From positions 1 through 64,000 of IMG/VR virus record IMGVR_UViG_3300027782_000027: DNA of 64,000 nt. One strand, given 5' to 3'. The notes beneath the pieces were generated by a model. The model was not told the origin of the DNA, made no database searches, and saw only the letters and a program-made list of their open reading frames with translations. Of the stretch, positions 420 to 61,841 are shown piece by piece; position 1 is the stretch's first letter; every line of letters begins with the position of its first letter. The translations under genes and the position numbers were made by a program.

Positions 420-451
420 ACCCCATTGAATTCGCTACTCAGTGGGGTTTT
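420..451 (+). terminator. intrinsic terminator
   Basis: ACCCCATTGA...TCAGTGGGGT stem followed by T run, between convergent genes. Confidence 0.7.
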
Positions 452-1235
452 CATTTAAGACATCTTCTACCACTGGTGAATTACATGTACGCGATGTGTG
501 TGTTGTAGTTACCTTATGATTTAGGACTTCTCCCACCTCACTGGGAACAATAGTGGGTCTACAATTGGTTTTAGTTACCTTATGATTTAATACCTTCTCC
601 ACCATATTCGGAAACGGCGGTGTATTGAATGATATTGTAGATACCTTATGATTTAATACATCTTCCACCTTTATTTCCAACTGAAAACAAGAATGACCTG
701 TTGTAGATACCTTATGATTTAATACATCTTCTACCTTATGTCCAACCCATCCATCATACCCATCAGTTGTAGATACCTTATGATTTAATACATCTTCCAC
801 CAAGAAACCTTCGTTACCGATATCGTTTTGCGTTGTGGATACCTTATGATTTAATACCTCTTCCATCTTCACACTTGCCTTCATGCCCATGTAAACAGTT
901 GTAGATACCTTATGATTTAATACCTCTTCCACCCCGCCTGTAATCATGGTCTGCGCCATGGCAGTTGTGGACACCTTATGATTTAATACCTCTTCCACCC
1001 AAGAAGCAAGTATTGGTTCAAAATCTTTGGGTTCCAATGAGAAAATAGTAAAAAAACTATTAAAGAAATAATATCTCCACCACAAACGACCACTCTTTTC
1101 AAATTCAAAATACCAATGTTCCTTTTCTCGGTCAATTAACCATATAGAATCTTTATATGGGATTATCTCCGTATTACCTAATTCTTTGTATAGTTGTTTG
1201 AATACGACCTGTTTTAATCTATCAGTTACTTTCAT
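435..1235 (-). CDS. repeat-array protein 1: N-terminal domain of about 80 aa plus (VEEVLNHKVSTT + unique 10 aa) x8
   Basis: ORF translation; paralog of 1222-1899, 1883-2521 and 9657-10385. Confidence 0.85.
   Translation of the reverse strand: MKVTDRLKQVVFKQLYKELGNTEIIPYKDSIWLIDREKEHWYFEFEKSGRLWWRYYFFNSFFTIFSLEPKDFEPILASWVEEVLNHKVSTTAMAQTMITGGVEEVLNHKVSTTVYMGMKASVKMEEVLNHKVSTTQNDIGNEGFLVEDVLNHKVSTTDGYDGWVGHKVEDVLNHKVSTTGHSCFQLEIKVEDVLNHKVSTISFNTPPFPNMVEKVLNHKVTKTNCRPTIVPSEVGEVLNHKVTTTHTSRTCNSPVVEDVLNENPTE
502..999. CRISPR. CRISPR-like array 1, in frame inside a CDS; 8 full 36-nt repeats plus a degenerate one ending at 471; 30-nt spacers
   Basis: Consensus GTTGTRGATACCTTATGATTTAATACMTCTTCCACC at 502, 568, 634, 700, 766, 832, 898, 964; exact 66-nt period; no cas genes in the window. 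Confidence 0.55.
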
Positions 1236-1899
1236 TTTCTTTTTTGTTGTTTAATACCTCATCTACCGATTCCGCTCTTCTTGAGATGTATTCTTCCGTT
1301 TTGGATACCTTACGATTCAATATATCTTCCACCAAAAAGTTTCCTTCACCTACGTCACGGACTGTTTTGGATACCTTACGATTCAATACCTGTTCCACCG
1401 CAATGGTTACAGTTCCTGCCTTTCCTGCAGTTGTGGATACCTTACTATTCAATACCTCTTCCATCATATCATTCGAAGTGAAACTGAATTGCTGAGTTGT
1501 GGATACCTTACTATTCAATACCTCTTCCACCCCTTGCTTAAAACTTCTGAAACGGCTTGCAGTTGTGGATACCTTACTATTCAATACCTCTTCCACCCCG
1601 CCATCCATGACATATTGAGTGCTGTCAGTTGTGGATACCTTACTATTCAATACCTCTTCCACCCAAGATGAAATAATTGGTTCAAAATCTTTGGACTCCA
1701 AAGAGAAAAAAGAAAAGAAAGATTTGAAATAATCATATCTCCAATATAAACATCCACTTTCAGTTAGTTGGAAATACCAGTATTTTTCTTCTCTATCAAT
1801 AAACCAATAACTGTATTGGGTAGGGATAATTTCCACATTACCTAATTCTTTGTATAGTTGTTTGAATACAACCTGTTTTAATCTATCCGTTACTTTCAT
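1222..1899 (-). CDS. repeat-array protein 2 (6 unique 10-aa cassettes)
   Basis: ORF translation; repeats VEEVLNSKVSTT. Confidence 0.85.
   Translation of the reverse strand: MKVTDRLKQVVFKQLYKELGNVEIIPTQYSYWFIDREEKYWYFQLTESGCLYWRYDYFKSFFSFFSLESKDFEPIISSWVEEVLNSKVSTTDSTQYVMDGGVEEVLNSKVSTTASRFRSFKQGVEEVLNSKVSTTQQFSFTSNDMMEEVLNSKVSTTAGKAGTVTIAVEQVLNRKVSKTVRDVGEGNFLVEDILNRKVSKTEEYISRRAESVDEVLNNKKENESN
1298..1663. CRISPR. CRISPR-like array 2, in frame; 6 full repeats plus a degenerate one ending at 1267
   Basis: GTTGTGGATACCTTACTATTCAATACCTCTTCCACC-type repeats at 1298, 1364, 1430, 1496, 1562, 1628; 30-nt unique spacers. Confidence 0.55.
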
Positions 1900-2521
1900 T
1901 TTCTTTTTTATTGTTTAATGCCTTTTTCACCCAAGCACTATTTAATACTTCTTCCACTGACCTTTCGGAAAACAAGGAATTATTTTTAGTTGTTGATACC
2001 CTACTATCTAATACTTTTTTTACCTTTCTTTTTTGGGCGGCGTCTACTTCAAAAGTTTCGGATACCTTATGATTTAAGACCTCTTCCACCCACTTTGCTG
2101 TTACAGTAGTTTTCTCTTCAGTTGTGGATACCTTATGATTTAATACCTCTTCCACCAGAGGAAATTCGTCAATTACAAACATTTTTGTTGTGGATACCTT
2201 ATGATTTAATACCTCTTCCACCTTTCGCGAGAAGTAACCGAGCTTATTGCCTGTCGTGGATACCTTATGATTTAATACCTCTTCCACCCAAGAAGATATT
2301 ATTGGTTCAAACTCACTCTGTTCCAAAGAAAAAATGCTGAAAAACGATGGGAAGAATGAGTATCTCCAAAATAAACATCCATCTTTAGACAACTGAAAAT
2401 ACCAATAACAATTTTCCCTATCAATGAACCATACAGAGTCTTTATACGGGATTATCTCCACATTACCTAACTCTTTGTATAGGTGTTTGAATATGAGTTG
2501 TTTTAGCTTATCTGTAACCAT
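1883..2521 (-). CDS. repeat-array protein 3 (5 unique cassettes); start moved to ATG at 2521
   Basis: ORF translation; TATCTTTG element just upstream of the ATG; start matches paralogs. Confidence 0.85.
   Translation of the reverse strand: MVTDKLKQLIFKHLYKELGNVEIIPYKDSVWFIDRENCYWYFQLSKDGCLFWRYSFFPSFFSIFSLEQSEFEPIISSWVEEVLNHKVSTTGNKLGYFSRKVEEVLNHKVSTTKMFVIDEFPLVEEVLNHKVSTTEEKTTVTAKWVEEVLNHKVSETFEVDAAQKRKVKKVLDSRVSTTKNNSLFSERSVEEVLNSAWVKKALNNKKENESNG
1989..2288. CRISPR. CRISPR-like array 3, in frame; 5 repeats plus a degenerate one ending at 1958
   Basis: Repeats at 1989, 2055, 2121, 2187, 2253; 66-nt period. Confidence 0.55.
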
Positions 2522-2546
2522 AAGCACAAAGATAATAAAAAATTAC

Positions 2547-3112: not shown

Positions 3113-3451
3113 TTAATTTTCAGACGGTAATTTTAACGACCATTGGGAGCTCATTATCTTGTTGGACATTTGACCCTCCAAATTTAGTTTATTCTTAACC
3201 CATTGCCCAACAATTCTGGTGGATTGATAACTGTTAAGAGAAAAGAAGGAAGAAATGGCTTCAATTAAACCTTTATAGATAAAACACAATTCATTATTGG
3301 AATGATTACCACCATATTGAATTTGAGCTGACTCATCTTCAGGATATGAAAAATATATACTGGCACCAGTTTTAGTTATAATGAAATCCTGACTATCAAG
3401 ATACCTGAATATTACTTTATCTAATTGTGATTCTGTGATTAAATATTTCAT
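3113..3451 (-). CDS. MKYLITE-family small protein
   Basis: MKYLITESQLDKVIFRYLD...FFSL...WV paralog family. Confidence 0.8.
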   Translation of the reverse strand: MKYLITESQLDKVIFRYLDSQDFIITKTGASIYFSYPEDESAQIQYGGNHSNNELCFIYKGLIEAISSFFSLNSYQSTRIVGQWVKNKLNLEGQMSNKIMSSQWSLKLPSEN

Positions 3452-3819
3452 GATAATGTTATACTTCTAACTGATTTAACCTCATAGTCAGGAAAGAACT
3501 CATTAAATACATCTGACATAATGAATTTGCCGTGAACTAACCAAATGGGATGAGGAAACGCTGTACCATATATATCGTCAAAGTTCCTATTATAGTATAA
3601 ATCGCCACTTGGTTTATTATAAACCATTACAGCGTTTTGGTCACTATCAAATAAGTTAAGTCTTAAATCATTTTCATCATATGAATTAACCAAATTTGCA
3701 AAATAAGGAACCAATTTAGGTTTCAGTCTTTCGTATTGTTCCGTATATTCAGAATCTCTCCAAGTTCTTTCAAGTTCAGATATTAATTTATGTTGTGACT
3801 CGGTAATAATATACTTCAT
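3448..3819 (-). CDS. MKYIITE-leader small protein
   Basis: shared leader; upstream TATTTAT motif. Confidence 0.8.
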   Translation of the reverse strand: MKYIITESQHKLISELERTWRDSEYTEQYERLKPKLVPYFANLVNSYDENDLRLNLFDSDQNAVMVYNKPSGDLYYNRNFDDIYGTAFPHPIWLVHGKFIMSDVFNEFFPDYEVKSVRSITLS

Positions 3820-3851
3820 GTAATAATAAATATAATTATATTTATTATATT

Positions 3852-4175
3852 ATGAACCTACAAGAGAATATAAAAAAAGTATTAAGGGAAGAAACAGATT
3901 TTTCACCACAGTTCAAAAGAAGACTGAATAGATTTAAATCGTTTGTATGGGATAACAATGTAACTAATTATCCATGTGATTTTGAAAACTTTGAAGCGTT
4001 CATGCGTGGTATACAACATGAAATTATGGACATGATTACAGATGGTTCTGATACCGATGGTCCATTGTCTGAGTGGTTAAAATATAAAGATGGTGTTACG
4101 TATGTAGAAAACTACATGAGGGATGACTTAGAAAAGTTTTATAATAAAGAATGTGTTGATGTCTTATACGTATAA
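3852..4175 (+). CDS. MNLQENIKKVLREE-leader small protein
   Basis: leader shared with 5643 and 9201. Confidence 0.8.
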   Translation: MNLQENIKKVLREETDFSPQFKRRLNRFKSFVWDNNVTNYPCDFENFEAFMRGIQHEIMDMITDGSDTDGPLSEWLKYKDGVTYVENYMRDDLEKFYNKECVDVLYV

Positions 4176-4520
4176 ATCAAGAAATTGTTCCACTGTTATT
4201 CCAAGACCTGAGATACCAAATAAATTCATAAATTCAGATTCATCATATCTATCACATCCGTTATTGATAATCCAAGGAATATCTGTAACATAATTCATCT
4301 GATAAAGTATATCATAACTATTATCTAATTTTATAAGATACATCGGACCATAGTTATCCATACTAAGTCTTCTTCGTAAACCATCATCAGTAATACAGTT
4401 ATCAAAAGACATCATTACATCAATCAAATCTGGGTCAATCTCCACACGACCCGTAAGGTCAATATTAAATTTGTCTTTAATTAATGTTTTTAATTTTGAT
4501 TCAGTGATTAAGTATTTCAT
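4164..4520 (-). CDS. MKYLITE-leader small protein
   Basis: shared leader. Confidence 0.8.
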   Translation of the reverse strand: MKYLITESKLKTLIKDKFNIDLTGRVEIDPDLIDVMMSFDNCITDDGLRRRLSMDNYGPMYLIKLDNSYDILYQMNYVTDIPWIINNGCDRYDESEFMNLFGISGLGITVEQFLDLYV

Positions 4521-4536
4521 TATATATAAATATTAG

Positions 4537-4947
4537 TTAACAGTTACCTGTATTATAAACCTCAATATTGTGACCTCTAATTAGACCTCCACCGAACTGA
4601 TATAAAGCCTTAGCAATAGTATCTCTATACACACTCCTATTACCTTCTTCATACATATACCTCCCCACATTTTCAGGTTCCGGCTTAGGTATGTAGACAA
4701 CCAAATCCATAGAGTTACGAGTGGGGATGATATTATAACTACAATATCTTAAGACGGTTGAAATATCATTTTCAAATATAGTTTTTGTTAGAAAGATAAT
4801 ATCTTCTCTTTTTCCTTCAAGACCAATCTCATCAATAATATCTTCAGGTTCCTTATCAGTCATTTTACACAGAGTACGCATACCAAATTTCTCTAATAAG
4901 GGTTTAAGAGTTTTGCTATATTGATTCTCAGTGATTAAGTATTTCAT
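4537..4947 (-). CDS. MKYLITE-leader small protein
   Basis: shared leader. Confidence 0.8.
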   Translation of the reverse strand: MKYLITENQYSKTLKPLLEKFGMRTLCKMTDKEPEDIIDEIGLEGKREDIIFLTKTIFENDISTVLRYCSYNIIPTRNSMDLVVYIPKPEPENVGRYMYEEGNRSVYRDTIAKALYQFGGGLIRGHNIEVYNTGNC

Positions 4948-4955
4948 ATATTATA

Positions 4956-5285
4956 TTAGTTATTTACTCTTATCCATACATTCGGTGCGGGTTTAGCCCC
5001 ACGGACTTGTACAACTATTACTTTGAGGGTATTTTCAACCCATCTACGGATAAGTTCCATGGAATCGGAGATACCCAAAGAAAAGAAAGAGGCCACTTCA
5101 TTAATTAAACTATTAACAATGTAACACCAGCCACTAATTTTATCATATCTAATCTCAGCGTATTCATCATCTTCTAAATTAACTAAAAATATAGTTGCAC
5201 CCTTTTTAATCTGAATAAAGTTCTTAATATCCAAATATCTAAAGATTACTCTGTCTAATTGTGATTCGGTGATAAGGTATTTCAT
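4956..5285 (-). CDS. MKYLITE-family small protein
   Basis: close paralog of 8520-8816. Confidence 0.8.
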   Translation of the reverse strand: MKYLITESQLDRVIFRYLDIKNFIQIKKGATIFLVNLEDDEYAEIRYDKISGWCYIVNSLINEVASFFSLGISDSMELIRRWVENTLKVIVVQVRGAKPAPNVWIRVNN

Positions 5286-5288
5286 ATA

Positions 5289-5609
5289 TTAATATTCAAA
5301 AAACATAACATCAACATCAAATACTTTACTAAACCAATCAGAAATGAATTTACCTGATTGCTCTTTATCAAGTGGATACATGGATGAAAACTTATCTAAA
5401 AAAGATTCATCAATAAATAATCTACCATCACTATGGTCAAACTCCATTAAAATAAAAAAATCAGGGCCTCTTTCCTGGCTATATATATTAATGAAATCAC
5501 TATCTGATGTTCTATCATAATCTAATATATTATTTAACTCAGATATCATTAAATTATTTATTACCGATTTGGCTTTATCTAATTGTGATTCGGTGATAAG
5601 ATATTTCAT
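5289..5609 (-). CDS. MKYLITE-leader small protein (start moved to 5609)
   Basis: shared leader begins at codon 8 of the track ORF. Confidence 0.8.
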   Translation of the reverse strand: MKYLITESQLDKAKSVINNLMISELNNILDYDRTSDSDFINIYSQERGPDFFILMEFDHSDGRLFIDESFLDKFSSMYPLDKEQSGKFISDWFSKVFDVDVMFFEY

Positions 5610-5642
5610 ATAGAATATAAATATAATCATATTTATAATAAT

Positions 5643-5972
5643 ATGGACTTAAAAGAATCTATAAAAAGAATACTGAGGGAAGAACTATCGGCGAGAATTA
5701 AAAGAAGACTTTCTAATGATGAAATGGAAAATGAGTTTCTTGAATCTTTTGAAGGTGCTTATCGTCTTACAAAAGACAGAAAGGTTTTAAGTTCACATTT
5801 TTTAGATGAGTTAGTCTACACAACAATAACCTTTATGATGGATGGGGTACATTGGAGATTTGTTAGCACATTACCTGAAGATGAATTTTGGTATGATGAT
5901 ATACACCAAGGGTTAGAAAATCATTATAGAAAAAGAATTACACGGATGTATAATGAAAGAAAAGGTTTTTAA
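5643..5972 (+). CDS. MDLKESIKRILREE-leader small protein
   Basis: shared leader; similar to 3852-4175. Confidence 0.8.
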   Translation: MDLKESIKRILREELSARIKRRLSNDEMENEFLESFEGAYRLTKDRKVLSSHFLDELVYTTITFMMDGVHWRFVSTLPEDEFWYDDIHQGLENHYRKRITRMYNERKGF

Positions 5973-5975
5973 AGA

Positions 5976-6254
5976 TTAATTAGAGTTTAAGAATTTAAGT
6001 AACGCTCCAATATATTTGGAACGTTTATCATAGAATTCAGTATCATCATCATATTGAAAAAACTCTTCACCTCTATGTCTATCAATGAACTTTTCAATTA
6101 ATTCATAAGCGTAATCATCTCTGTCGGCGGAATCTTCAAAATCTTCTTCATCCATAATGTAGTTATAATCATCCCTAAGTGCTTCCAATTCATCCATTGT
6201 AAACCTCCTAAGTAAAAATACTTCTAACTGTGATTCTGTAATTAAGTATTTCAT
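5976..6254 (-). CDS. MKYLITE-leader acidic small protein
   Basis: shared leader. Confidence 0.8.
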   Translation of the reverse strand: MKYLITESQLEVFLLRRFTMDELEALRDDYNYIMDEEDFEDSADRDDYAYELIEKFIDRHRGEEFFQYDDDTEFYDKRSKYIGALLKFLNSN

Positions 6255-6267
6255 TATTCGTTAACCA

Positions 6268-6621
6268 TTAATCTGTAACTATTAATCTGTAATCATATGG
6301 ACCATCCCAAATCGTACTATTACTAATACCCAAAGTATTATTAACCCATTCTTTGATTATATCCAAACAATCCGATTTACCAATGGGTAATAAGGTAGAT
6401 AAATCCTCAGTCAAACTACGATTTACAAACACCCAATTCCTAACTTCACCAAAGGCGTTGTTAACATAAACACTAATCTGTGATTGACTATCTGACTCAC
6501 TGTTTAAGAAATATATATAATTGTTGAATCTCTTCTTGTTGTCATATATCACAAAGTCCTGAATATCAAGATACTTAAAGATTACTTTCTCTAATTTTGA
6601 TTCGGTGATAAGGTATTTCAT
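6268..6621 (-). CDS. MKYLITE-family small protein
   Basis: paralog family motif. Confidence 0.8.
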   Translation of the reverse strand: MKYLITESKLEKVIFKYLDIQDFVIYDNKKRFNNYIYFLNSESDSQSQISVYVNNAFGEVRNWVFVNRSLTEDLSTLLPIGKSDCLDIIKEWVNNTLGISNSTIWDGPYDYRLIVTD

Positions 6622-6633
6622 TATATATAAATA

Positions 6634-7002
6634 TTAGTTAAGGGGTATTCCCAATAACGAATGAATAAGGATGTCTTTGTTAGACGGTATTTTTAACCAA
6701 GACTGGGACATCAAAGTAGCCTTGGTGGTATTTGTAACCTTCATTTGTAGGGTATTCCCAACCCACCTACCAATAGCTGATTTAGAATCAGATTCGTCCA
6801 AAGAAAATAACGATGAGATGTTCTTGATTAATTCGGGACTTATTACACAACCAAAATTACCATTTTTGATTTGAGCATATTCATCATCTTCAGAGTTAAC
6901 GAAGTATACTAAAAGACCTATTTTAATTTGAATAAAATCTTGATGGTTCAAGTAAATAAAGATTGCTCTATCTAATTGTGATTCTGTAATTAAGTATTTC
7001 AT
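6634..7002 (-). CDS. MKYLITE-family small protein (start moved to 7002)
   Basis: leader begins at codon 15 of the track ORF. Confidence 0.8.
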   Translation of the reverse strand: MKYLITESQLDRAIFIYLNHQDFIQIKIGLLVYFVNSEDDEYAQIKNGNFGCVISPELIKNISSLFSLDESDSKSAIGRWVGNTLQMKVTNTTKATLMSQSWLKIPSNKDILIHSLLGIPLN

Positions 7003-7109
7003 TATATATAAATACAAAGATACACATAAAACTGAACAATACATATTGGGTTAATAATTTAATAAGAATAAGATAATATGGTTTGAGGTCGTTTTTAATA
7101 CTTATTATT

Positions 7110-7817
7110 ATGGATTTATCAAAGTTTTTAACCATAGTAATCCCTTGTAAGAACGAGGGCAAGATAATTGAACAAACGTTGTCCTTATTAAACTTTCAAA
7201 AGGGAATACAAGATGTTAGAGTTATTGTTTGTGATTCATCGGATGATGATTATACATCCTATTCTTTGGAAAATAGGAGAACAGATTATTTTAATCTACA
7301 GATTATTTCAGGAGGACTTCCGTCTGTTGCAAGAAATAAGGGAGCAGAGAATGTGGAAACACCTTATGTTCTATTTTTGGATGCTGACATATTCTTATTG
7401 GATTTTGACATATTAAACAATTGTATATGGGAGTTCTTATTACATAATACAGATTTGATTACATGTAAGGTAAGGTCAACGACAGGTGAGTATAATAGTA
7501 TATTCAGATTGTTTGACACCATACAAAAGGTATTTAAACCAATCACGCCATTTTGTCTTGGTGGGTTTATGATGGTTAAGAAAGAAGTATATGATACAAT
7601 CGGCGGGTTTGATGAAAACGCAAGAGTTGCTGAGGATTATCTATTCTCCAAACAAGTTAAACCAAGTAAGTTTTATATCATGAATACAACAGTATTCACA
7701 AGTCCAAGAAGGTTCAAACAGAAAGGTGTGTGGTATATGTTAAAACTTATGGTTAGTTCATTCTTCAACAGGAACAATAAAAATCATTTTGAGGATGATA
7801 AAGGATACTGGGAATGA
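7110..7817 (+). CDS. glycosyltransferase family 2
   Basis: IVIPCKNE, ARNKGA, LFLDAD (DxD) and GGFDE...ED motifs. Confidence 0.9.
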   Translation: MDLSKFLTIVIPCKNEGKIIEQTLSLLNFQKGIQDVRVIVCDSSDDDYTSYSLENRRTDYFNLQIISGGLPSVARNKGAENVETPYVLFLDADIFLLDFDILNNCIWEFLLHNTDLITCKVRSTTGEYNSIFRLFDTIQKVFKPITPFCLGGFMMVKKEVYDTIGGFDENARVAEDYLFSKQVKPSKFYIMNTTVFTSPRRFKQKGVWYMLKLMVSSFFNRNNKNHFEDDKGYWE

Positions 7818-8527
7818 ATAATTGGAAAACGATAATCATGAGTGACTTACACTTAGGAGCGAGACAATCACAGACAGATAAGATAATAAGTTTCTTGGAT
7901 AATAACACAACGGAAAAACTAATACTGAACGGTGATATAATAGATGGTTGGGCTCTCAAAGGTAATGGTAAATGGACAAAGGATTGTACCAAGATATTCA
8001 GGAAGTTCATGAAGATGTCCGAGAAGAATACAAAGGTAATTTATATAAGAGGAAACCATGATGACTTCTTAAAAGATTTTATTCCATTTAAATTAAACAA
8101 CATCAGGATTGTAAGGAAGTATGTTCATACAGGGATAGATAATAGAAAGTATTTTTGTTTTCACGGAGATGTATTGGATTTTGTTATAATGGAAGCAAGA
8201 TGGCTTGCAGTAATCGGTGGATGGTCATATGATATTGTCATTAAGTTTAATACTCTATATAACAAAATAAGAAAGTGGTTTAACTTACCATATCATTCAT
8301 TAGCTAACACAATAAAACAATCTGTAAAAGGGGCGATTAACTTTGTATCTGATTTTGAGGATAACGCGAAAGGTTTAACAAAACAAAAGGGATATGATGT
8401 TGCGGTGTGTGGACATATTCATCACCCGAAGATAGAGAATGACTATATGAACTCAGGAGACTTTTGTGAGAACTCTACATGTCTTGTAGAAGATTACAAT
8501 GGGGTGTGGAAAATAATTACTATCTAA
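7814..8527 (+). CDS. UDP-2,3-diacylglucosamine hydrolase-like (LpxH family) metallophosphoesterase
   Basis: SDLHLG, GDIID, GNHD, HGD, GHIH, NSGDF calcineurin-like motifs; translationally coupled to the GT2 gene. Confidence 0.85.
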   Translation: MNNWKTIIMSDLHLGARQSQTDKIISFLDNNTTEKLILNGDIIDGWALKGNGKWTKDCTKIFRKFMKMSEKNTKVIYIRGNHDDFLKDFIPFKLNNIRIVRKYVHTGIDNRKYFCFHGDVLDFVIMEARWLAVIGGWSYDIVIKFNTLYNKIRKWFNLPYHSLANTIKQSVKGAINFVSDFEDNAKGLTKQKGYDVAVCGHIHHPKIENDYMNSGDFCENSTCLVEDYNGVWKIITI

Positions 8528-8816
8528 CTATAACTTCTTTAACTCTTCTATCCAAAGTATTCTCAACCCATCTAGCAATAACATATTTAGAATTATCAAA
8601 TTCTATAGAGAAGAAATCTTTAATCTCATCAATTAACCCAAAAATTATTACACACTCACCACCTCTAAAGTATTCGATTGATGAGTCGATATATTCACCA
8701 CCTTCAGAATTGGCGAAGTAAATTGCACTCCCTCTTTTAATCTGAATAAAGTTCTTAATATCCAAATATCTAAAGATTACTCTATCTAATTGTGATTCTG
8801 TTATAAGGTATTTCAT
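8520..8816 (-). CDS. MKYLITE-family small protein
   Basis: paralog family motif. Confidence 0.8.
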   Translation of the reverse strand: MKYLITESQLDRVIFRYLDIKNFIQIKRGSAIYFANSEGGEYIDSSIEYFRGGECVIIFGLIDEIKDFFSIEFDNSKYVIARWVENTLDRRVKEVIVR

Positions 8817-8832
8817 TATATATAAATATTAG

Positions 8833-9168
8833 TTAGAAGGGTAACCTCAATGTCAAACTTCCACTGTTTGTAATGGACATTGATTTTTCGTAACTGTATT
8901 TTACTTGTAATGTATCACCAATCCATCGAACAATAATCTTCTCAGAATCAGAATCACTCAAAGAAAATAATGATGAAATATCGTCAACTAATTCATAATT
9001 CATAAAAGAAAAATTATCACTCATATCGTATCTGATTTGACAATACTTATCACCTTCTGAATTAACAAAGTATATAGTGTCTTTATCCTCAACCTGAATA
9101 AAATCTTGATTGTCAAGATACCTAAAGATTACTTTTTCTAATTTAGATTCTGTGATAAGATATTTCAT
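8833..9168 (-). CDS. MKYLITE-family small protein
   Basis: paralog family motif. Confidence 0.8.
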   Translation of the reverse strand: MKYLITESKLEKVIFRYLDNQDFIQVEDKDTIYFVNSEGDKYCQIRYDMSDNFSFMNYELVDDISSLFSLSDSDSEKIIVRWIGDTLQVKYSYEKSMSITNSGSLTLRLPF

Positions 9169-9200
9169 ATGATAATAAATATAATTATATTTATAATATT

Positions 9201-9656: not shown

Positions 9657-10385
9657 TTATTGATTTAAGACCTGTTCCATCACATAATTCATTACAGACA
9701 TTTCTACATCCGTTGTACATACCTTATTATTTAATACCTCTTCCACTCCTCTTGTGAAAGGTCCAGAATATGCTTCCATTGTAGATACCTTATGATTTAA
9801 TACCTCTTCTACCTCAATTCTTCCAACGTAATCAAGTGAATCGGTTGTGGATACCTTATGATTTAAGACCTCTTCCACCAATGAATGTTCGGGGTATTTG
9901 AGAATGGTAGTTGTAGACACCTTAACATTATGACTTAATACATCTTCCACCTTCCAAGGAACACGAACTTTAACATCGCACGTTGTGGATACCTTATGAT
10001 TTAATACATCTTCCACCATCATGCTTTCAACACCGCTACCTGTCACGGTTGTGGATACCTTATGATTTAAGACCTCTTCCACCACGTAGTTCCTAAGCCC
10101 TATAGGGCGATATGTTGCGGATACCTTATGATTTAAGACCTCTTCCACCCAAGAAGATAGAACAGGACAAAAATCATCCGAACTCATGGAGAATATTTGA
10201 AAAAACGAATTAAAAAAATCGTATCTCCACCATAAAGTACCTGACTCATCAAGTTCAAAGTACCAATGTTTATTATCCCTATTAATGAACCATATAGACC
10301 CATTATAAGGAATAATCTCACAATCACCTAACTCTCTATATAGGTGTTTAAAAATAATTTGTTTTAATCTATCTGTAATAACCAT
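9657..10385 (-). CDS. repeat-array protein 4 (7 unique cassettes)
   Basis: paralog of 435-1235; TATATTTG element just upstream of the ATG. Confidence 0.85.
   Translation of the reverse strand: MVITDRLKQIIFKHLYRELGDCEIIPYNGSIWFINRDNKHWYFELDESGTLWWRYDFFNSFFQIFSMSSDDFCPVLSSWVEEVLNHKVSATYRPIGLRNYVVEEVLNHKVSTTVTGSGVESMMVEDVLNHKVSTTCDVKVRVPWKVEDVLSHNVKVSTTTILKYPEHSLVEEVLNHKVSTTDSLDYVGRIEVEEVLNHKVSTMEAYSGPFTRGVEEVLNNKVCTTDVEMSVMNYVMEQVLNQ
9712..10149. CRISPR. CRISPR-like array 4, in frame; 7 repeats (one with a 6-nt insertion) plus a degenerate one ending at 9681
   Basis: Repeats at 9712, 9778, 9844, 9910 (42 nt), 9982, 10048, 10114; all spacers 30 nt. Confidence 0.55.
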
Positions 10386-15115: not shown

Positions 15116-15616
15116 ATGGAACCTGAAGAAGAAAATATTGGTATGATGAATATTTTAGGAGATAATGTTTTGTTAACAAGGGATTATGGTAATTATACTA
15201 TAACTAATGGAGGAATGACTGTTAATCCGTATCTTGATAATGATTATCGTGTTTCTTCAATGAACAACAGAACGTATAATAAAGATGGTGAATTTGTTTT
15301 TCCTGAGATGTTATTCAAGGTTCTTAAGAAGAGTTTACCTGGTATTCATTCAATTGTTATTAATAAGTTTGAAACTAAATTTACATATACTGTTGATAGT
15401 TTTGAATCTACCCCAAAGTACTTGGTATTTGTTGATGTTATATACAATTGGGATTCAAGTGAGGTGTTATCTCCTGAGAAGTTGGGTGATAAAATCAACA
15501 TGTCATTTCCTATGATATATACTGATGTTAAGTTTGTCACCTTTAGTGTAAATACCGTTAAGGTTGAGAGACGTGATTACGAGAAAGAGTTTATGAATAT
15601 CTTTGGTAAAAAATAA
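15116..15616 (+). CDS. hypothetical protein
   Basis: 166-aa ORF; TATCTTTG upstream. Confidence 0.75.
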   Translation: MEPEEENIGMMNILGDNVLLTRDYGNYTITNGGMTVNPYLDNDYRVSSMNNRTYNKDGEFVFPEMLFKVLKKSLPGIHSIVINKFETKFTYTVDSFESTPKYLVFVDVIYNWDSSEVLSPEKLGDKINMSFPMIYTDVKFVTFSVNTVKVERRDYEKEFMNIFGKK

Positions 15617-15635
15617 TTTTTTTCTTCGTTGTTCC

Positions 15636-15658
15636 AATCCCCCCTACCCCCTTTTTTG
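15636..15658 (+). repeat. dispersed intergenic element AATCCCCC(C)TACCCCCTTTTTT (other copies at 16089, 16513, 20849)
   Basis: four near-identical copies, each just after a stop codon and before TATTTAT. Confidence 0.85.
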
Positions 15659-15679
15659 TTTTGATGTATTTATTGTAAT

Positions 15680-16072
15680 ATGAAATACCAAATCACAAAG
15701 GAACAATATTCTAAACTTGTCTATAAGTTAATTGAAGCATTTTTTAAGGATGTTAAATTTTACAAAGATGATGGTGGGGGTTATTTGACTTATGATATTA
15801 CTGTTGATGGTGAGGATGTTGCTTATATTCACACGAAAAAAAGTCCTCATATAGCTAAGGGATGTGAATATGAACTTGTAATATATGACGATACTATATT
15901 AAAGATAACAGACTTTGTTCCGATTTTTAGGAAGAAGGTATTCTCAAAAATACTCATTAAATATTTTTCTGATATTACTGGCGAAGATATTGATTGTATT
16001 AATTTTGATATGAAACATCCTGGAAGTGATGATACAATTATATATACAAAAAAATTCAAAAAGAAAAAATAA
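15680..16072 (+). CDS. MKYQITKEQ-leader protein
   Basis: variant of the MKYLITE leader. Confidence 0.75.
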   Translation: MKYQITKEQYSKLVYKLIEAFFKDVKFYKDDGGGYLTYDITVDGEDVAYIHTKKSPHIAKGCEYELVIYDDTILKITDFVPIFRKKVFSKILIKYFSDITGEDIDCINFDMKHPGSDDTIIYTKKFKKKK

Positions 16073-16133
16073 TTTTTTTTCGTCGTTCAATCCCCCCTAC
16101 CCCCTTTTTTGTTTTTAGATATTTATATATAAT

Positions 16134-16514: not shown

Positions 16515-16553
16515 TCCCCCTACCCCCTTTTTTGTTTTTGGATACTTATTTAT

Positions 16554-16745
16554 ATGAAAGAATTTTTAAAATATCTTATCATATGGATTGCTGAGAATCT
16601 ATCTATTCCATTTTGGGTTGTTGGTCATGTCCATCTATCACTTAATGTTTATAACGACATTTATGAGGTTATTGCATCTTTTGGAATGAACATAATTGTT
16701 GGTGTAGGTTTTTATTTTGGTTGGAAAGAATCTTTAAAGAAATAA
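16554..16745 (+). CDS. small membrane protein
   Basis: two hydrophobic segments. Confidence 0.65.
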   Translation: MKEFLKYLIIWIAENLSIPFWVVGHVHLSLNVYNDIYEVIASFGMNIIVGVGFYFGWKESLKK

Positions 16746-20515: not shown

Positions 20516-20827
20516 ATGAAATATATTATCACCGAGTCTCAAGAGATGTCAATTAGAAAAGTTAATTTCTTTAAAGAATATCTTGAGAACCTATTATCTA
20601 AATACGAATGGTTTAATGGTGATGTCTCGATAGAAACAAAAAATTGGAAAGTTAAAGATAAGACATATCCTGTATATCAAATTATACTAAATACAGGTGG
20701 TCGTAGTTATCACGCTTATGACGAGGGTTCAGAGATTGATGATAATATTGACACTATGTTTAAATTATTATTCCCTAAAGACAAGAACGGAGATTCTACT
20801 GCGGTGTGGGATGTTATTTTTATATAA
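20516..20827 (+). CDS. MKYIITE-leader protein
   Basis: paralog of 13944-14216. Confidence 0.8.
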   Translation: MKYIITESQEMSIRKVNFFKEYLENLLSKYEWFNGDVSIETKNWKVKDKTYPVYQIILNTGGRSYHAYDEGSEIDDNIDTMFKLLFPKDKNGDSTAVWDVIFI

Positions 20828-20894
20828 AATATTTTTTCCCGTTGTTCCAATCCTCCCTACCCCCCTTTTTATTTTCTGATGTATTTATAGTATT

Positions 20895-28907: not shown

Positions 28908-30695
28908 ATGAGGAATTTATTGACTGAAGTTAGTAAGATGAAAAACATGATGGGTTTACAAGAGGCAGATAAGCCAAAATATAACCCTGAAGTAAAATAT
29001 CTTGTTTCAGTTTTAAAAGATAATAAAGTGTATAGTGCTCAAATCCAAAAATTCATTAATAGGATTAATGAATTTTCAAAAGACGGTTTAGTTGATTTTG
29101 GATTAATTACCCGAGGTATTTTAAAAACTTTAAAGTTAAAAGGTAACAAAGATATTAATGTTTTTGAATTTTTCAAACAACTAACTAAATCATTAGAAAA
29201 AAGAAAAAATAAAAAAGAAGTTGTTAATCCTGAAGAAGAACCATCAATTTTAGATAAAGACATTTATAAAAAAGAAATATTTTTTCTACAGGTTGAACTT
29301 TTAAAGTTACAGGAATGGTTAAAACAAACAGGTAAAACTGTTATAATTGTTTTTGAAGGAAGAGACTCGGCAGGTAAAGGTTCTACAATTAAGAAATTCA
29401 CTGAAAATTTAAATCCAAGATATTATAAAGTTATTGCTCTTGGTATCCCAACACCTGATGAAAGAAAGAACTGGTGGGATAGATACAGTAATCAAATTGA
29501 AAAAGGTAAGATAAACTTCTTTGATAGAAGTTGGTACAATAGAGGATTAGTTGAACCTGTAATGGGTTATGGTTCATCAGAAGAGTACGAAGACTTTATG
29601 GATAATGTTCAGGATTTTGAAGAATCATTGGTTGTTGATGGGGATTACTTATTTAAACTTTGGTTCTCAATAGATAAAGAAACTCAAGCTAAGAGATTTG
29701 ATTTCAGACAGAAGTCACCATTGAAATATTGGAAGTATTCTGAGAATGATGAGAAGATGCAAGATGTGTGGGAAAAGTTTACAGAGTATAAACAAAAACT
29801 TTTTGATAAAACATCAACCGTAAACCATCCGTGGGTTATTTTGGACGCTAACGATAAAAAGATTTCAGGTTTAAACTCAATTAGATACGTTTTACAAAAT
29901 ATTCCTTATACAAATAAGGATGAGGATGTTTTAAACAAAGACTTCCCTGAAGCGATGACGGTTTTAAAACCAAATATTAATGAGCAATCAGTTTTTGATT
30001 TCTATAACCAATTAACGGGTAAATCACAACAAAAACAAGAACCAAATTTTATGGATACATGGTCATCTATGGGACAACCAAAAGACCAAATGACACCAAA
30101 TTCAGGAGGTGCTGTTGATGCAGTTAAAGCTGGTGCTAAAAAAATTGCAAAAATTGCAAAAGAAAAGTCATCAAATTCAAATACAGTTGGGGTCGGAACA
30201 GTTTCAGATAAACTTGTAAATTTTGTAGCGAATATTGAGTTTTTTGTTAAGTGTGTTTATGACGACGCTAAAGGTGGTAAATGTGTGAGAAAAGAACCTG
30301 ATTGTTGTTTAAGAGGAAAATCCCCAACTCCCGGAGCAAAGGCAACAATAGGTTATGGTACAACGTATTATCCTGGTGGAATACCTGTTAAACCTAATGA
30401 CCCTGACATTACTGAAACAAGAGCAAAAGAATTAATGAGAAATACATTAAACAAAAATGCAAAAAAAATACTTAATTTATACCCAAACTTAAATCAACAA
30501 CAATTAGATGCGATGGCTTCATTATGTTACCAAATGGGACCTGATGGTTGTACAACAGAAGCTCCAAATTTATCAGCAGCCTTAAAAAGTAATCCAAATA
30601 ATTTACAAAATGTTGGACAACATTTTGTTGATTTCCCATTCAAAGACAGAAGAGAAAAAGAGTGGAAAATTTATAGTCAAGGAATTTATTCTTAA
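28908..30695 (+). CDS. ppk2: polyphosphate kinase 2 fused to a C-terminal GH24 lysozyme-like domain
   Basis: FEGRDSAGKG and FDRSWYNR (PPK2); E...VYDD, TIGYG, LNQQQLDAMASL.Y..G, RR.KE (phage lysozyme). Confidence 0.85.
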   Translation: MRNLLTEVSKMKNMMGLQEADKPKYNPEVKYLVSVLKDNKVYSAQIQKFINRINEFSKDGLVDFGLITRGILKTLKLKGNKDINVFEFFKQLTKSLEKRKNKKEVVNPEEEPSILDKDIYKKEIFFLQVELLKLQEWLKQTGKTVIIVFEGRDSAGKGSTIKKFTENLNPRYYKVIALGIPTPDERKNWWDRYSNQIEKGKINFFDRSWYNRGLVEPVMGYGSSEEYEDFMDNVQDFEESLVVDGDYLFKLWFSIDKETQAKRFDFRQKSPLKYWKYSENDEKMQDVWEKFTEYKQKLFDKTSTVNHPWVILDANDKKISGLNSIRYVLQNIPYTNKDEDVLNKDFPEAMTVLKPNINEQSVFDFYNQLTGKSQQKQEPNFMDTWSSMGQPKDQMTPNSGGAVDAVKAGAKKIAKIAKEKSSNSNTVGVGTVSDKLVNFVANIEFFVKCVYDDAKGGKCVRKEPDCCLRGKSPTPGAKATIGYGTTYYPGGIPVKPNDPDITETRAKELMRNTLNKNAKKILNLYPNLNQQQLDAMASLCYQMGPDGCTTEAPNLSAALKSNPNNLQNVGQHFVDFPFKDRREKEWKIYSQGIYS

Positions 30696-47204: not shown

Positions 47205-47278
47205 GCCTTCGTAGCTCAGTAGGATAGAGCAACAGATTTCTAATCTGTGGGCCAGGGGTTCGAATCCCTTCGGGGGTA
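47205..47278 (+). tRNA. tRNA-Arg (anticodon TCT)
   Basis: GCCTTCG acceptor, TAGCTCAG..GGATAGAGC D arm, ACAGA-TTTCTAA-TCTGT anticodon arm, GGTTCGAATCC T arm; CCA not encoded; promoter and terminator flank it. Confidence 0.93.
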
Positions 47279-47284
47279 CTATTT

Positions 47285-50463: not shown

Positions 50464-50856
50464 TGGTGGAGGTGCTGGGTTTCGAACCCAGGTCCAAAAA
50501 TGTTTACGATAAAACACTACACGTTTAGGTCATTGTTTTTCTAAACAATCCGAAACTTCACAATTCCCTTATTTTATAGTGGTTCGGTTTACTGAGAACT
50601 AATCCTCCACTTTGTTCCTTTTCGGATAGAAACCACACCACGGTACGAGCTTCTGTTTCAAGGCGTATGCTTACCGGCCCATTGTATACTAATCTTAGAT
50701 TAGGCTACAGATACTTCTTCAGTACGGATTAAACCGAGTGTAGAAAGTTTTGCAATTGTGTTGCCGTTTGTTTTTTAAACCAGTTTTACAGGGTTAGTTT
50801 AGCCCCGACGTGCGTTTTATAATAAATTCATTCCTGTCAAATCCAGAAACACCCCC
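50464..50856 (-). ncRNA. ssrA: tmRNA
   Basis: 5' GGGGGTGTTTCTGGATTTGACAGG; 3' CTGGGTTCGAAACCCAGCACCTCCACCA; tag ORF 50765-50700; TATCTTTG promoter upstream. Confidence 0.92.
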
Positions 50857-60091: not shown

Positions 60092-61837
60092 ATGAGTTTA
60101 TCTAAAGAAGCCGTTTTAATGGAGTATGCCAAGTGTATGAAATCAACACCATACGCCCTTAAAACTTATTTACAGACATATGACAACACTGTTTCAAAGT
60201 ATGTCCCATTAGAGTTATTCCCTGACCAAATTAGTCTGGTTGAAGATTATGAAAACTATAATGAAAATATTGCACTAAAGTATAGACAAGCTGGTGTATC
60301 TACGGTAACCGCTGCTTGGTCATCAAAAAAACTTGTTTTTGCTAAAAAGAATAGTCCTGAAAAGGTTTTGATTATAGCAAATAAGTTGGATACTGCGGTG
60401 GAGGTGGCGAATAAGATTAGAGGATTCACCGACCAATGGCCTAGTTGGGTTGGTGTTGGGTTTTCTGCTGAAAAAAATTCACAAAGACATTTTAAATTAA
60501 CTAACGGATGTGAAGTTAAGGCAGTTGCGACATCTAAGGATGCTCTTCGTGGTTATACACCCACAATATTAATATTTGACGAGGCTGCGTATATTGAAGC
60601 TGATGGGGATTTTTGGGCGGCTTGTATGGCATCCTTATCTACAGGTGGTAAAGTAATAGTTGTATCAACACCAAACGGATATGACGCAATCTATTATGAA
60701 ATTTACGACCAAGCATTAAAGGGAATGAATGAATTCAAAGTTTCCGAAATGGTTTGGTGGAAAGACCCAAGATATGCGAAAGATTTATCATTAGTTAATG
60801 TTAAAGATATTATTCATTATTATTTAAATCGTAATGAATACCCGAATGTTGAAATTATTGAATATAATAATAAAGAAAAGAACTTTGATGAGATAAGACA
60901 ACTGATTTCACAGGGTTATAAGCCAAACTCATCTTGGTATGAGTCAATGGTAAAGAAACTTAAATACGATAAACGTAAAGTTAACCAGGAGTTGGAATGT
61001 GCGTTTCTTGGTTCAGGGGATAACGTATTTAATTCTGATATGTTGGAAGATTTAAGGGTAAATATGGTTAAGGAACCACCTACGAAGATGATGGGTGGTG
61101 GACTATGGATTTGGAAAGAACCTGAAATAGGTAAAAAATATATCATGGGAGTTGACGTATCTCGTGGTGACAGTGAAGACTTTTCAACATTTCAAATTGT
61201 TGATTTTGATACAAGAGAACAGGTTGCTGAGTATGTTGGTAAACTTCCTCCTGACACTTTGGCTGAAATATGTTATAAGTGGGGTAATATGTATAATGCG
61301 TTCATTGTTGTGGATATTACTGGTGGTATGGGTGTTACAACATCTTTAAGATTAAGGGAACTTGGATATAGGAATGTGTATGTTGATGGAGTTGATGTGT
61401 CAAACAAATGGCAATACGACCCAAAGGCAACTGAAAAAATACCAGGAATTAACTTTAATGCTAAAAGAGTTCAAATTATAGCAACTTTTGAAGAATATCT
61501 AAGACATGGATTTAGAATAAATTCAAGTAGGTTGTTAAATGAAATGAATACATTTATTTACATGAATGGAAGACCTGACCACCAAAAGGGACAACATGAT
61601 GACTTGATTATGTCTGTTGCGATGGCACTTTATGTTGGTGAAACATCATTTTCATCACTTAACAAGGTGACAAATCAAACAAAGGCGATGATTGACTCGT
61701 GGACTGTTAACACTAATGAATTTAATAGAAGACAATTTATGGACCCGGTAATTTCACAACAACAAGAAAACTTTAAACGAGAGGCAACAAAAAGTGACTA
61801 CGAAAACTATTTATGGTTATTCGGTGGTAAACGATAA
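60092..61837 (+). CDS. terL: terminase large subunit (T4 gp17-like)
   Basis: KYRQAGVST Walker A variant, ILIFDEAAY Walker B, STPNG, QELEC.FLG, GVDVSRG, HDDLIM. Confidence 0.93.
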
Positions 61838-61841
61838 AAAT

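Follow-up and report, generated by a model that had tools for sequence, protein, structure and literature searches.

The closest described counterparts of the locus studied here are the type VI-B (Cas13b) and type II-C CRISPR arrays of the Flavobacterium columnare group, comprising F. columnare, F. covae and Flavobacterium sp. J27. In the arrays examined here, Flavobacterium VI-B repeats are 36 nt, start with GTTG, end with GGTATCTACAAC, and are separated by 29-31-nt spacers, in agreement with the Cas13b repeat features given in the sequence-only reading. A leader-distal repeat motif has been described, and in F. columnare most new spacers come from the infecting phage (PMC8092290). Viruses can also carry sequences that resemble host CRISPR repeats without carrying cas genes, as virus-borne mini-arrays or as solitary repeat units and RNA anti-CRISPRs (Racr; Camara-Wilpert et al. 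2023, PMC10651486). Racrs are non-coding, have their own promoter, and were called at 90% or more identity to a host repeat, keeping its fold. Among protein-coding loci, cyanobactin precursors of the PatE type contain a leader followed by invariant flanks, conserved even at silent sites, and hypervariable cores of fixed length. In the antigenic variation loci Borrelia vlsE and Neisseria pilE/pilS, and in polar minisatellites, variable segments are exchanged between copies through flanking conserved repeats, with variation biased to one end. MIMIVIRE (Mimivirus R349) is a repeat element inside a viral ORF that was proposed to act like CRISPR, and has four copies of one virophage-derived 15-mer.

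Here we examined a 64,000-nt stretch (the window) of the 240-kb record of a freshwater jumbo phage, in which four paralogous minus-strand genes carry 36-nt repeats and unrelated 30-nt inserts laid out like a CRISPR array, yet all of it is translated, a combination not described before. The coordinates of the features are collected in Table 1.

Table 1. Features of the repeat-containing genes and their surroundings in the window.
Feature	Coordinates	Strand	Description
First repeat of g1	964..999	-	36-nt repeat, the first (N-domain-proximal) of gene 435-1235; encodes VEEVLNHKVST(T); starts at codon position 3 and ends at codon position 2
Gene g1	435..1235	-	266 aa; N-terminal alpha/beta domain plus 8 repeat units and a degenerate terminal repeat; array 436-999
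Gene g2	1222..1899	-	225 aa; same domain plus 6 units and a degenerate terminal repeat; array about 1232-1663; repeat carries the array-specific variant ..TTGAATAGT..
Gene g3	1883..2527	-	212-214 aa, probable ATG at 2521; domain plus 5 units and a degenerate repeat; array about 1923-2288
Gene g4	9657..10385	-	242 aa; domain plus 7 units; one repeat carries a 6-nt in-frame insertion; array about 9657-10149
N-terminal domain coding part of g1	1000..1235	-	Equivalents at 1664-1899, 2289-2521 and 10150-10385; predicted fold a1-b1-b2-b3-b4-a2-a3; helix a3 runs into the first repeat; occupies the position a leader would hold
TCTTG	1000..1004	-	On the coding strand, the Ser codon plus the first two bases of the Trp codon that precedes the first repeat
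Array-less paralogs	3113..9168	-	Cluster of about 100-117-aa paralogs that start MKYLITESQ (3113-3451, 4956-5285, 6268-6621, 6634-7002, 8520-8816, 8833-9168); homologous to the N-domain plus first repeat but carrying no array

The sequence-only reading had flagged the repeat at 964-999 as resembling Bacteroidota type VI-B/II-C direct repeats, and the observation itself is confirmed. The plus strand at this position reads GTTGTGGACACCTTATGATTTAATACCTCTTCCACC, and the repeat is its reverse complement. This copy ends GGTGTCCACAAC, one base off the consensus GGTATCCACAAC quoted in that reading. The repeat is far beyond chance, with 25 copies in the four genes of the window. Related phage loci add up to 841 copies in 136 arrays. 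Of 705 spacers, 688 are exactly 30 nt and the rest are 36 or 39 nt, thus multiples of 3 only, whereas about 30% of the spacers in true arrays are 29 or 31 nt. The spacers (hereafter cassettes) fall into 279 mutually unrelated families.

Comparison with true CRISPR repeats showed that the closest found are the 36-nt VI-B repeats of F. columnare, F. covae and Flavobacterium sp. J27, which match 24 of 36 bases (67%), with the 3' terminal 12-14 nt identical. The phage repeat ends (A)AGGTATCTACAAC, and its opposite strand starts GTTGT(G/A)G, sharing the first 7 nt (GTTGTGG) with the F. covae II-C repeat but only 16/36 overall. The 36+30 geometry and the polarity are the same, with the variable end at the 5' (leader) side and the GTTGT motif leader-distal. 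The sequence-only reading would have been contradicted had the best matches been no better than those of random phage 36-mers; in the rest of the phage genome, however, 0-1 of 475,628 36-mers reach 24/36, and none has a terminal exact run of 12 or more, such that its own condition for refutation is not fulfilled. The resemblance falls well below the 90% identity used to call solitary repeat units (PMC10651486), and an Rfam scan of positions 400-2600 at E up to 10 returned no CRISPR-DR family. Of the VI-B termini, the 3' ACAAC is present, while the 5' end is GGTG in this window and GTTG in one divergent subfamily of the related loci, an observation that does not settle whether the repeat has VI-B-type ends. 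The match to the Bacteroidota-type II-C start is likewise insufficient to assign the repeat to type II-C, as pairing with a tracrRNA anti-repeat was not examined because the host is unknown.

We next examined the repeat fold. The GTGGA/TCCAC terminal stem pointed out in the sequence-only reading is predicted, but it is the only substantial helix, and the fold is weak (-5.4 kcal/mol, z -1.3) and not better than that of shuffles. The true VI-B repeats fold at -9.8 to -10.9 kcal/mol and have a 6-bp upper stem that is absent here, as that reading had noted. The terminal stem shows no covariation. The TCTTG motif, which was suggested to act as a leader anchor, abuts the first repeat in all four window genes. 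It is, however, a Ser-Trp codon pair and is not conserved across the family: in relatives it is TCTTG in 88 of 126 arrays and GAATG (Glu-Trp) in 24.

To investigate whether the arrays are translated, in-frame stops and substitution patterns were analyzed. All four arrays sit in open frames, and 0 of 279 cassette families carry an in-frame stop, against 31-52% in the other five frames. Variants within a cassette family are 54% synonymous against 24% expected (52 synonymous and 44 non-synonymous unique events, p 3e-10), corresponding to a crude omega of 0.27 and indicating purifying selection on the cassettes as peptides. These loci therefore depart from the non-coding nature of CRISPR arrays. 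The N-domain plus first repeat aligns to the neighbouring array-less paralogs (hhalign 96%, E 2e-9), with WVEEVLN aligning to their WVxNTL helix, and the 5' half of the repeat is homologous to this protein helix. AlphaFold2 places the first repeat in helix a3 of a confident domain (pLDDT 91), whereas the repeat tail scores pLDDT about 30, has no regular secondary structure and is predicted to be disordered. Together with the near-maximal entropy of the variable halves, this does not fit a solenoid repeat protein such as an LRR protein with 22-residue repeats. Pfam and PHROGs searches with the four proteins gave nothing significant, and a search of the ESM Atlas gave no usable hit. A fold search with the N-domain model gave no PDB match and only two uncharacterised AlphaFold DB clusters at TM about 0.7, so that the N-domain fold has no characterised relative. 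Of 182 family members that show a clear repeat period, 178 have exactly 22 aa, although the motif itself drifts (VEEVLNHKVSTT, LESVLNCGVTTT, VDEVLNCEVETT, VEETLNCKVLST).

Despite being translated, the arrays evolve like CRISPR arrays. Cassette order is the same in 125 of 126 co-occurring pairs. Singletons are enriched at the first position (53%, against about 30% elsewhere), and mean mismatches rise from 2.6 in the first repeat to 6.7 in the last. This polarity is weaker than in textbook arrays; singleton cassettes also occur at internal positions, and the array listings suggest internal replacements. Phages 97-98% identical in N-domain DNA differ in about a third to over half of their cassettes. 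The same cassette occurs in different arrays and at different positions, and keeps its 5' repeat variant when its context changes, while each array keeps its own repeat variant. Repeat position 1 is G in 677 of 705 internal repeats, so the last cassette residue is limited to NNG codons, and synonymous sites of the first repeat are more conserved than those of the N-domain (major-codon share 0.91 against 0.70).

The cassette families are mutually unrelated in any register or strand. Hamming distances are 7 or less, or 11 and above at chance frequency, and shifted or inverted copies are not above shuffled controls. Duplication followed by gradual divergence is therefore not visible. Cassette composition is random-like and foreign to the phage, with GC3 of 0.40 against 0.20 in phage ORFs, and entropy of 4.1-4.2 bits at positions 1-9. 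Cassette GC3 falls from 0.425 at the 5' end to 0.34 at the 3' end (p 0.0075). Overall spacer GC is 0.42, which fits neither the phage (0.32) nor the spacers of the Flavobacterium arrays (0.32).

To look for a source of the cassettes, 338 unique spacers were searched against the phage's own genome, the usual main spacer source during infection, and against 670 kb of related phage DNA, without any match. Three first-position spacers had no out-of-array match in IMG/VR, and the commonest cassette, used as a positive control, gave 8 hits, all inside arrays. GenBank phages gave no DNA match to the first three window arrays and no tblastn match to the N-domain. The stretch 435-2527, which holds these three arrays, gave only marginal short matches in 401 Flavobacteriaceae genomes, none of spacer length and identity, and the spacers of the Flavobacterium arrays did not match the phage. 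As these databases are far from complete, the searches leave it undecided whether the cassettes derive from foreign nucleic acid. A six-frame search of the whole record (the phage is 82% complete) found no Cas1 and no reverse transcriptase (RT), the seven largest ORFs had no cas hit in PADLOC or Pfam and matched no defence-system models, and neighbouring genes in two related phage contexts showed no cas genes either. The host was not assigned: the nearest cultured TerL is that of a Flavobacterium phage at 27% identity, and ClpC-like neighbours are of mixed phyla. The absence of an RT hit, of a template copy in the genome and of adenine-specific changes (cassettes differ at all bases) does not fit a diversity-generating retroelement.

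The interpretation in the sequence-only reading is thus partly supported: the likeness to Bacteroidota VI-B and II-C repeats is greater than chance allows, but nothing indicates a Cas13b or Cas9 RNA decoy, or an integrase site. The explanation we favour, with moderate confidence, is that these are protein-coding cassette arrays and not CRISPR arrays. Each gene encodes a small, predicted alpha/beta domain whose last helix ends in VEEVLNHKV; this 12-residue motif (VEEVLNHKVSTT, 36 nt) is repeated 3-12 times and alternates with mutually unrelated 10-residue segments (30 nt). The unit of change is a DNA segment rather than a codon block, since the variable part starts at codon position 3 and ends at codon position 2, and the first G of the repeat is kept although it is the wobble base of a variable codon. 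Arrays change by gain, loss and exchange of whole 66-nt units, most likely by homologous recombination or gene conversion between the 36-bp repeats, which would act within an array, among the up to four arrays of one genome, and between co-infecting relatives. The architecture, the translation, the selection on cassettes, the unit-wise dynamics and the homology of the repeat to a domain helix are demonstrated by our data, whereas recombination as the engine and the biological role are inferences, the function of the protein being untested. Recombination only shuffles cassettes and does not create them, and how a new 30-nt cassette arises is not explained. The 5' enrichment of singletons and the GC3 gradient fit polar insertion of new DNA as well as, or better than, plain recombination. 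The strict 30-nt length and the terminal identity to real CRISPR repeats are left as coincidences, although the latter may instead be a sign of a shared DNA-level constraint.

Such polar insertion is the core of an alternative that we consider unlikely but not excluded, in which a ruler-type integrase inserts 30-bp prespacers next to the first repeat and duplicates the 36-bp repeat. The enzyme would be the host's type II-C Cas1-Cas2, which in F. columnare also serves the VI-B array in trans, or an unknown phage enzyme, and selection would remove out-of-frame and stop-containing insertions, leaving a CRISPR array that is also translated. The geometry shared with both F. columnare array types, the leader-distal GTTGT(G/A)GA motif and polarity (PMC8092290), the discrete, unrelated and random-like cassettes, the boundaries set out of phase with the codons, the decay of repeats toward the 3' end, the conserved order, the array-specific repeat variants, and the persistence of the 36+30 layout in deeply divergent subfamilies, one of which has a repeat starting GTTGGA and ending ACAAC, would all fit. 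On the other hand, no cas1 or RT gene was found in the 82%-complete phage, whose seven largest ORFs have no PADLOC hit, no spacer source was found in the genomes and databases searched, the host is unknown, and the spacer GC, the spacer lengths and the internal singletons are not those expected of such arrays. In its broadest form, also improbable, this reading would have phage genes write a heritable, ordered library of near-random 10-residue peptides, which selection then filters, amounting to a peptide-level counterpart of CRISPR memory on the virus side, or to an adaptation sink that diverts the host integrase.

About as doubtful is a multi-core precursor of processed or modified peptides, in which the N-domain would act as a leader or recognition domain, VEEVLNHKVSTT as a repeated recognition or cleavage sequence, and the 10-mers as released core peptides. 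The architecture, the nucleotide-level conservation of the flanks, the purifying selection on the cores, the predicted disorder and hence accessibility of the tail, and the several paralogous precursors per genome are consistent with this. However, no protease, cyclase, YcaO, radical-SAM or other maturation gene is recognisable next to the genes in this window or in the two related phage contexts examined, the cores show no positional residue preference, which is unusual for enzyme substrates, and the 'leader' is predicted to be a folded domain whose helix includes the first flank. Since processing was not assayed, these observations do not decide for or against a cyanobactin-like precursor. 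Very unlikely is an RNA mimic of host CRISPR repeats (a Racr-like anti-CRISPR or a hijacked guide array), whose mRNA or antisense would be bound or processed by host Cas13b, or by Cas9 with tracrRNA, sequestering or redirecting them. The terminal identity lies in the transcribed orientation of VI-B crRNA, with 30-nt spacers, and the published Racr survey found no type VI candidates but masked ORFs before searching, so in-gene mimics would have been missed (PMC10651486). Pieces of the genes occur in four metatranscriptome assemblies; the metatranscriptome and metagenome contigs show presence and alternative cassettes at repeat borders, but give no information on RNA processing. Against this reading stand the missing upper stem, the lack of compensatory changes, the low identity and the absence of an Rfam match, and substitutions within cassettes are biased to synonymous sites, so the peptide rather than the RNA is under selection. 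Promoter-like sites inside the repeats are not enriched on either strand. No complex was modelled, as no binding claim is made.

Compared with the described systems, the loci differ from the Flavobacterium arrays in lying inside genes, in being translated and selected as peptides, and in lacking the hairpin, a recognisable cas gene and a detected protospacer, while sharing repeat decay at the far end and conserved spacer order between relatives. They differ from Racrs in forming long arrays of 3-12 units inside ORFs, at 67% identity and without the fold. They differ from PatE-type precursors in having up to 11 unrelated cores in one gene, with CRISPR-like order and polarity. In vlsE and pilE/pilS the variable cassettes are homologous variants drawn from silent donor copies, whereas here they are mutually unrelated and no donor copies exist in the genome. 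In contrast to MIMIVIRE, hundreds of different 30-mers of unknown source sit between precise 36-nt repeats. CRISPR and solitary-repeat finders either mask ORFs, and so miss such loci, or would call them false arrays.

The family is large, counting 1,455 clusters at 90% identity and 485 at 50%, and essentially all members found so far come from lake and other aquatic metagenomes. These loci combine the DNA grammar of a CRISPR array, namely precise repeats, fixed-length unrelated inserts, conserved order, and novelty at one end with decay at the other, with full translation and selection on each insert as a peptide. No described system has this combination, whether CRISPR, diversity-generating retroelements, antigenic-variation cassettes or repeat proteins. 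The finding raises the question of where new 30-bp cassettes come from, and bears on whether CRISPR-type integration can act on, or be mimicked by, viral coding DNA. In the explanation favoured here, the phage population carries a combinatorial library of peptide cassettes, each of which, once present, is kept by purifying selection on its amino-acid sequence, and whose probable role is at an arms-race interface with the host, as a multivalent display or decoy of short peptides.

The window is the first 64 kb of a 240,759-bp IMG/VR virus record, which is estimated to be 82% complete and has a GC content of 32%. The record is that of a tailed jumbo phage, encoding a T4-type large terminase, a tmRNA (Rfam 130 bits) with an unusual predicted tag, AKLSTLGLIRTEEVSVA, a tRNA-Arg(TCT), a ClpC-like ATPase, a family-B DNA polymerase, a tail sheath, and one ORF that joins a polyphosphate kinase 2 (PPK2) domain to a phage lysozyme domain. 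Related contigs come almost entirely from freshwater lake and other aquatic metagenomes. The nearest cultured terminase belongs to Flavobacterium phage vB_FspM_immuto at only 27% identity, and the host is therefore not established. Outside the window, the record contains a 4,766-residue ORF, and several ORFs of 1,600-2,000 residues elsewhere in the record have no Pfam or PADLOC match. An imperfect, long tandem repeat of 18 nt (6 residues), rich in Thr, Pro and Asn, lies inside an ORF just after the large terminase gene.

The flagged repeat reads GTTGTGGACACCTTATGATTTAATACCTCTTCCACC on the plus strand, and its reverse complement is the first repeat of a minus-strand gene. The window holds 25 copies at a 66-nt period inside four paralogous genes, confirming the observation made in the sequence-only reading. 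Each protein consists of an N-terminal domain of about 78 residues, followed by n copies of VEEVLNHKVSTT plus 10 variable residues. The coding-strand consensus is GGTGGAAGAGGTATTAAATCATAAGGTATC(C/T)ACAAC, and the flagged copy ends GGTGTCCACAAC, one base off that consensus. TCTTG precedes the first repeat in all four genes, and corresponds to the Ser codon plus the first two bases of the Trp codon. In relatives, this position is occupied by TCTTG in 88 of 126 arrays and by GAATG in 24. The 5-bp terminal stem is predicted, but the fold is weak (-5.4 kcal/mol, z -1.3) and has no strong upper stem, and the stem positions show no compensatory change.

Coordinates of the repeat-bearing genes and of other features (window positions unless stated otherwise)
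Feature	Position	Strand
Flagged repeat copy (read on the plus strand)	964-999	+
Array gene containing the flagged copy	435-1235	-
Array gene	1222-1899	-
Array gene	1883-2527	-
Array gene	9657-10385	-
Loose ends (runs X1, X3 and X4) at which the CDVKVRVPWK cassette joins array repeats in lake assemblies	766, 1663, 2224	
Array-less paralogs of about 100-117 aa starting MKYLITESQ	3113-9168	
Small genes sharing the MKYLITESQ start and DNA around the start codon (repeat families D5-D8, D13)	3113-9188	
Second set of paralogs, starting MKK(I/V)VRLTESDL (repeat families D4, D10, D12, D19)	14203-35492	
C-rich motif preceding TATTTAT	15608-15678, 16061-16131, 16516-16554, 20821-20891	
PPK2-lysozyme ORF	28908-30695	+
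tmRNA and tRNA-Arg(TCT)	50464-50856, 47205-47279	-, +
18-nt tandem repeat, inside ORF 61794-63122	61997-62482	
4,766-residue ORF (position in the virus record, outside the window)	168785-183085	
Three-copy array in the Desulfobacterales MAG locus L021 (position in that locus)	18-187	

To examine whether the likeness to type VI-B and II-C CRISPR repeats is real, one genome for each of 185,579 prokaryote species was scanned for two copies of GGTATCYACAAC 52-56 nt apart. Six loci matched, of which the clear multi-copy CRISPR arrays were in Flavobacterium columnare, F. covae and Flavobacterium sp. J27. A shorter, three-copy array in a Desulfobacterales MAG, at 66-68-nt spacing and with a repeat of about 34 nt, GTTCCGGATACCGGCGAAAGTCGGTATCCACAAC, ends in the same 12-mer as the phage repeat (GGTATCCACAAC), while the other two hits showed no conserved repeat. 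The Flavobacterium repeats are GTTGGGAAAGCCCTTATTTTGAAGGGTATCTACAAC and GTTGTGAAAGCCTTTATTTTGAAAGGTATCTACAAC, both 36 nt in length with spacers of 29-31 nt. This is the VI-B repeat of F. columnare, whose array is filled in trans by the II-C Cas1-Cas2 (PMC8092290). The phage repeat matches them at 24 of 36 positions in the same orientation, with the last 12-14 bases identical. The F. covae II-C repeat, GTTGTGGTTTGATTAAAGATTAGAAAACACGATATT, shares its first 7 bases with the opposite strand of the phage repeat, but only 16/36 overall. The leader-distal GTTGT is reported as the motif common to II-C and VI-B repeats (PMC8092290), and in the phage genes it lies on the side away from the variable end, which is the same polarity.

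We next compared the match with what the rest of the phage sequence gives. Among 475,628 other 36-mers of this phage (both strands), 0 and 1 reach 24/36 to the two VI-B repeats, and none has a terminal exact run of 12 or more. After allowing for the thousands of repeat families that could have matched, we estimate the coincidence at roughly 1e-2 to 1e-4, although this is a rough inference of our own and not a computed value. The likeness is therefore more than random phage sequence gives, but is not proof of kinship. An Rfam search returned no CRISPR-DR match.

To investigate whether the arrays are translated, 136 arrays with 841 repeats and 705 spacers were collected from the phage, IMG/VR loci and 79 metagenome loci. 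Of the spacers, 688 are 30 nt, 14 are 36 nt and 3 are 39 nt, so that no length breaks the frame. None of the 279 cassette families contains an in-frame stop, while 31-52% contain one in each other frame. Within cassette families, 52 of 96 unique substitutions are synonymous, against 24% expected (p 3e-10), giving a crude omega of 0.27, and several cassettes have 3-5 nucleotide variants that all encode the same peptide. These results show that the arrays are translated and selected as protein.

The N-domain plus first repeat is homologous to the neighboring array-less paralogs (hhalign 96%, E 2e-9), with WVEEVLN aligning with their WVxNTL. At least ten small genes in this region start with the same nine residues, MKYLITESQ, and share conserved DNA around the start codon followed by TATATATAAATAT. 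Several of them belong to different protein families downstream of the motif, which could be a shared N-terminal targeting signal or a shared translation-initiation or promoter module. Some members of the array family (P0121 and P0212 among the relatives) carry the start MKYIITENQ fused in front of the array-type N-domain, and P0121 holds two domain copies in one protein, linking the two paralog families. A second set of paralogs in the window starts MKK(I/V)VRLTESDL and shares conserved upstream AT-rich sequence, and G+C-rich hairpin plus T-run terminator-like sites recur behind genes (ACCCCATTC..GTGGGGTTTTTT). A C-rich motif, CCCCCTACCCCCTTTTTTGTTTT, recurs four times in the otherwise AT-rich genome, each time just before TATTTAT, and is an unexplained, regulatory-looking element.

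With a 124-sequence alignment, AlphaFold2 gave a confident N-domain model (pLDDT 91) with the order a1-b1-b2-b3-b4-a2-a3, in which the first repeat is the C-terminal half of a3, whereas the repeat tail scored a pLDDT of about 30. The predicted fold has no solved relative, only two uncharacterized AlphaFold DB clusters at TM about 0.7. The 5' half of the repeat is therefore ancestral coding sequence, and not captured CRISPR DNA.

At the DNA level, the arrays nevertheless behave like CRISPR arrays. The cassettes are discrete and unrelated: 338 unique 30-mers fall into 279 families, Hamming distances are either 7 or less, or 11 and above at the frequency of codon-shuffled controls, and no k-mer sharing exceeds chance in any register or strand. 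They are random-like, with an entropy of 4.1-4.2 bits at positions 1-9 and with His, Cys, Trp and Arg well above the phage proteome, and their composition is foreign to the phage (GC 0.42 and GC3 0.40, against a GC3 of 0.20 in phage ORFs). The boundary is a DNA boundary, as the variable part runs from codon position 3 to codon position 2. The first G of the repeat, which is the wobble base of the last cassette codon, is kept in 677 of 705 internal repeats, and that residue is therefore limited to NNG codons. The same holds in divergent subfamilies, at 91% against about 68% expected. The first repeat is also conserved beyond its coding needs, with a major-codon share at its silent sites of 0.91, against 0.70 in the N-domain.

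The arrays are also polar, although more weakly than textbook arrays. Mean mismatches rise from 2.6 in the first repeat to 6.7 in the last. Cassette order is the same in 125 of 126 co-occurring pairs, and singletons make up 53% at the first position, against about 30% elsewhere. GC3 declines along the array from 0.425 to 0.34 (rho -0.21, p 0.0075), which fits younger cassettes at the 5' end, or GC-biased conversion there. Turnover is fast, as phages 97-98% identical in N-domain DNA differ in about a third to over half of their cassettes, and close orthologs share distal cassettes and differ in proximal ones. In lake metagenome assemblies, the cassette encoding CDVKVRVPWK joins repeats of three different arrays of this phage type, and several array variants therefore seem to coexist in natural populations. 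The layout is conserved across the family, which comprises 1,455 clusters at 90% identity and 485 at 50%. Of 182 members with a clear period, 178 have exactly 22 aa, although the motif drifts. Four divergent loci all have 36+30 nt, and one of their repeats is GTTGGAGTCGGTATTAAATTGTGGTGTAACAACAAC, which starts GTTGGA and ends ACAAC.

Other results argue against a working CRISPR connection. A six-frame search of the phage record found no Cas1 and no reverse transcriptase, and its seven largest ORFs have no PADLOC hit. No spacer matches the phage's own genome or related phage DNA. In F. columnare, most new spacers come from the infecting phage (PMC8092290). There were no matches in GenBank phages for the first three window arrays, none in IMG/VR outside arrays for the four spacers searched, and none of spacer length and identity in 401 Flavobacteriaceae genomes for those same three arrays. 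The spacer GC of 0.42 fits neither the phage nor the spacers of the Flavobacterium arrays, both at 0.32. Singleton cassettes also occur at internal positions, the same cassette occurs in different arrays, and a cassette keeps its 5' repeat variant when its neighbors change (1.9 against 5.2 mismatches), which is what recombination between repeats would produce.

Among the alternatives, integrase-type insertion into a gene and a multi-core peptide precursor are both possible but unlikely. An RNA mimic of CRISPR repeats is very unlikely, because the defining hairpin is missing and selection acts on the peptides. The interpretation offered in the sequence-only reading is partly supported: the resemblance of the repeat to Bacteroidota VI-B and II-C repeats is borne out in part, while the proposals that it acts as an RNA decoy and that TCTTG serves as a leader anchor are unsupported.

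The best-supported account, which we consider about as likely as not, with the remainder unknown beyond these alternatives, is a new kind of protein-coding cassette array. This account does not explain how new, unrelated 30-bp cassettes arise. In this view, a folded domain is followed by a disordered tail, in which copies of the domain's last helix motif alternate with fixed-length peptide cassettes. The cassettes would be shuffled as 66-bp DNA units by recombination between the 36-bp repeats, with each kept by purifying selection, and the probable setting is an arms race with the host.
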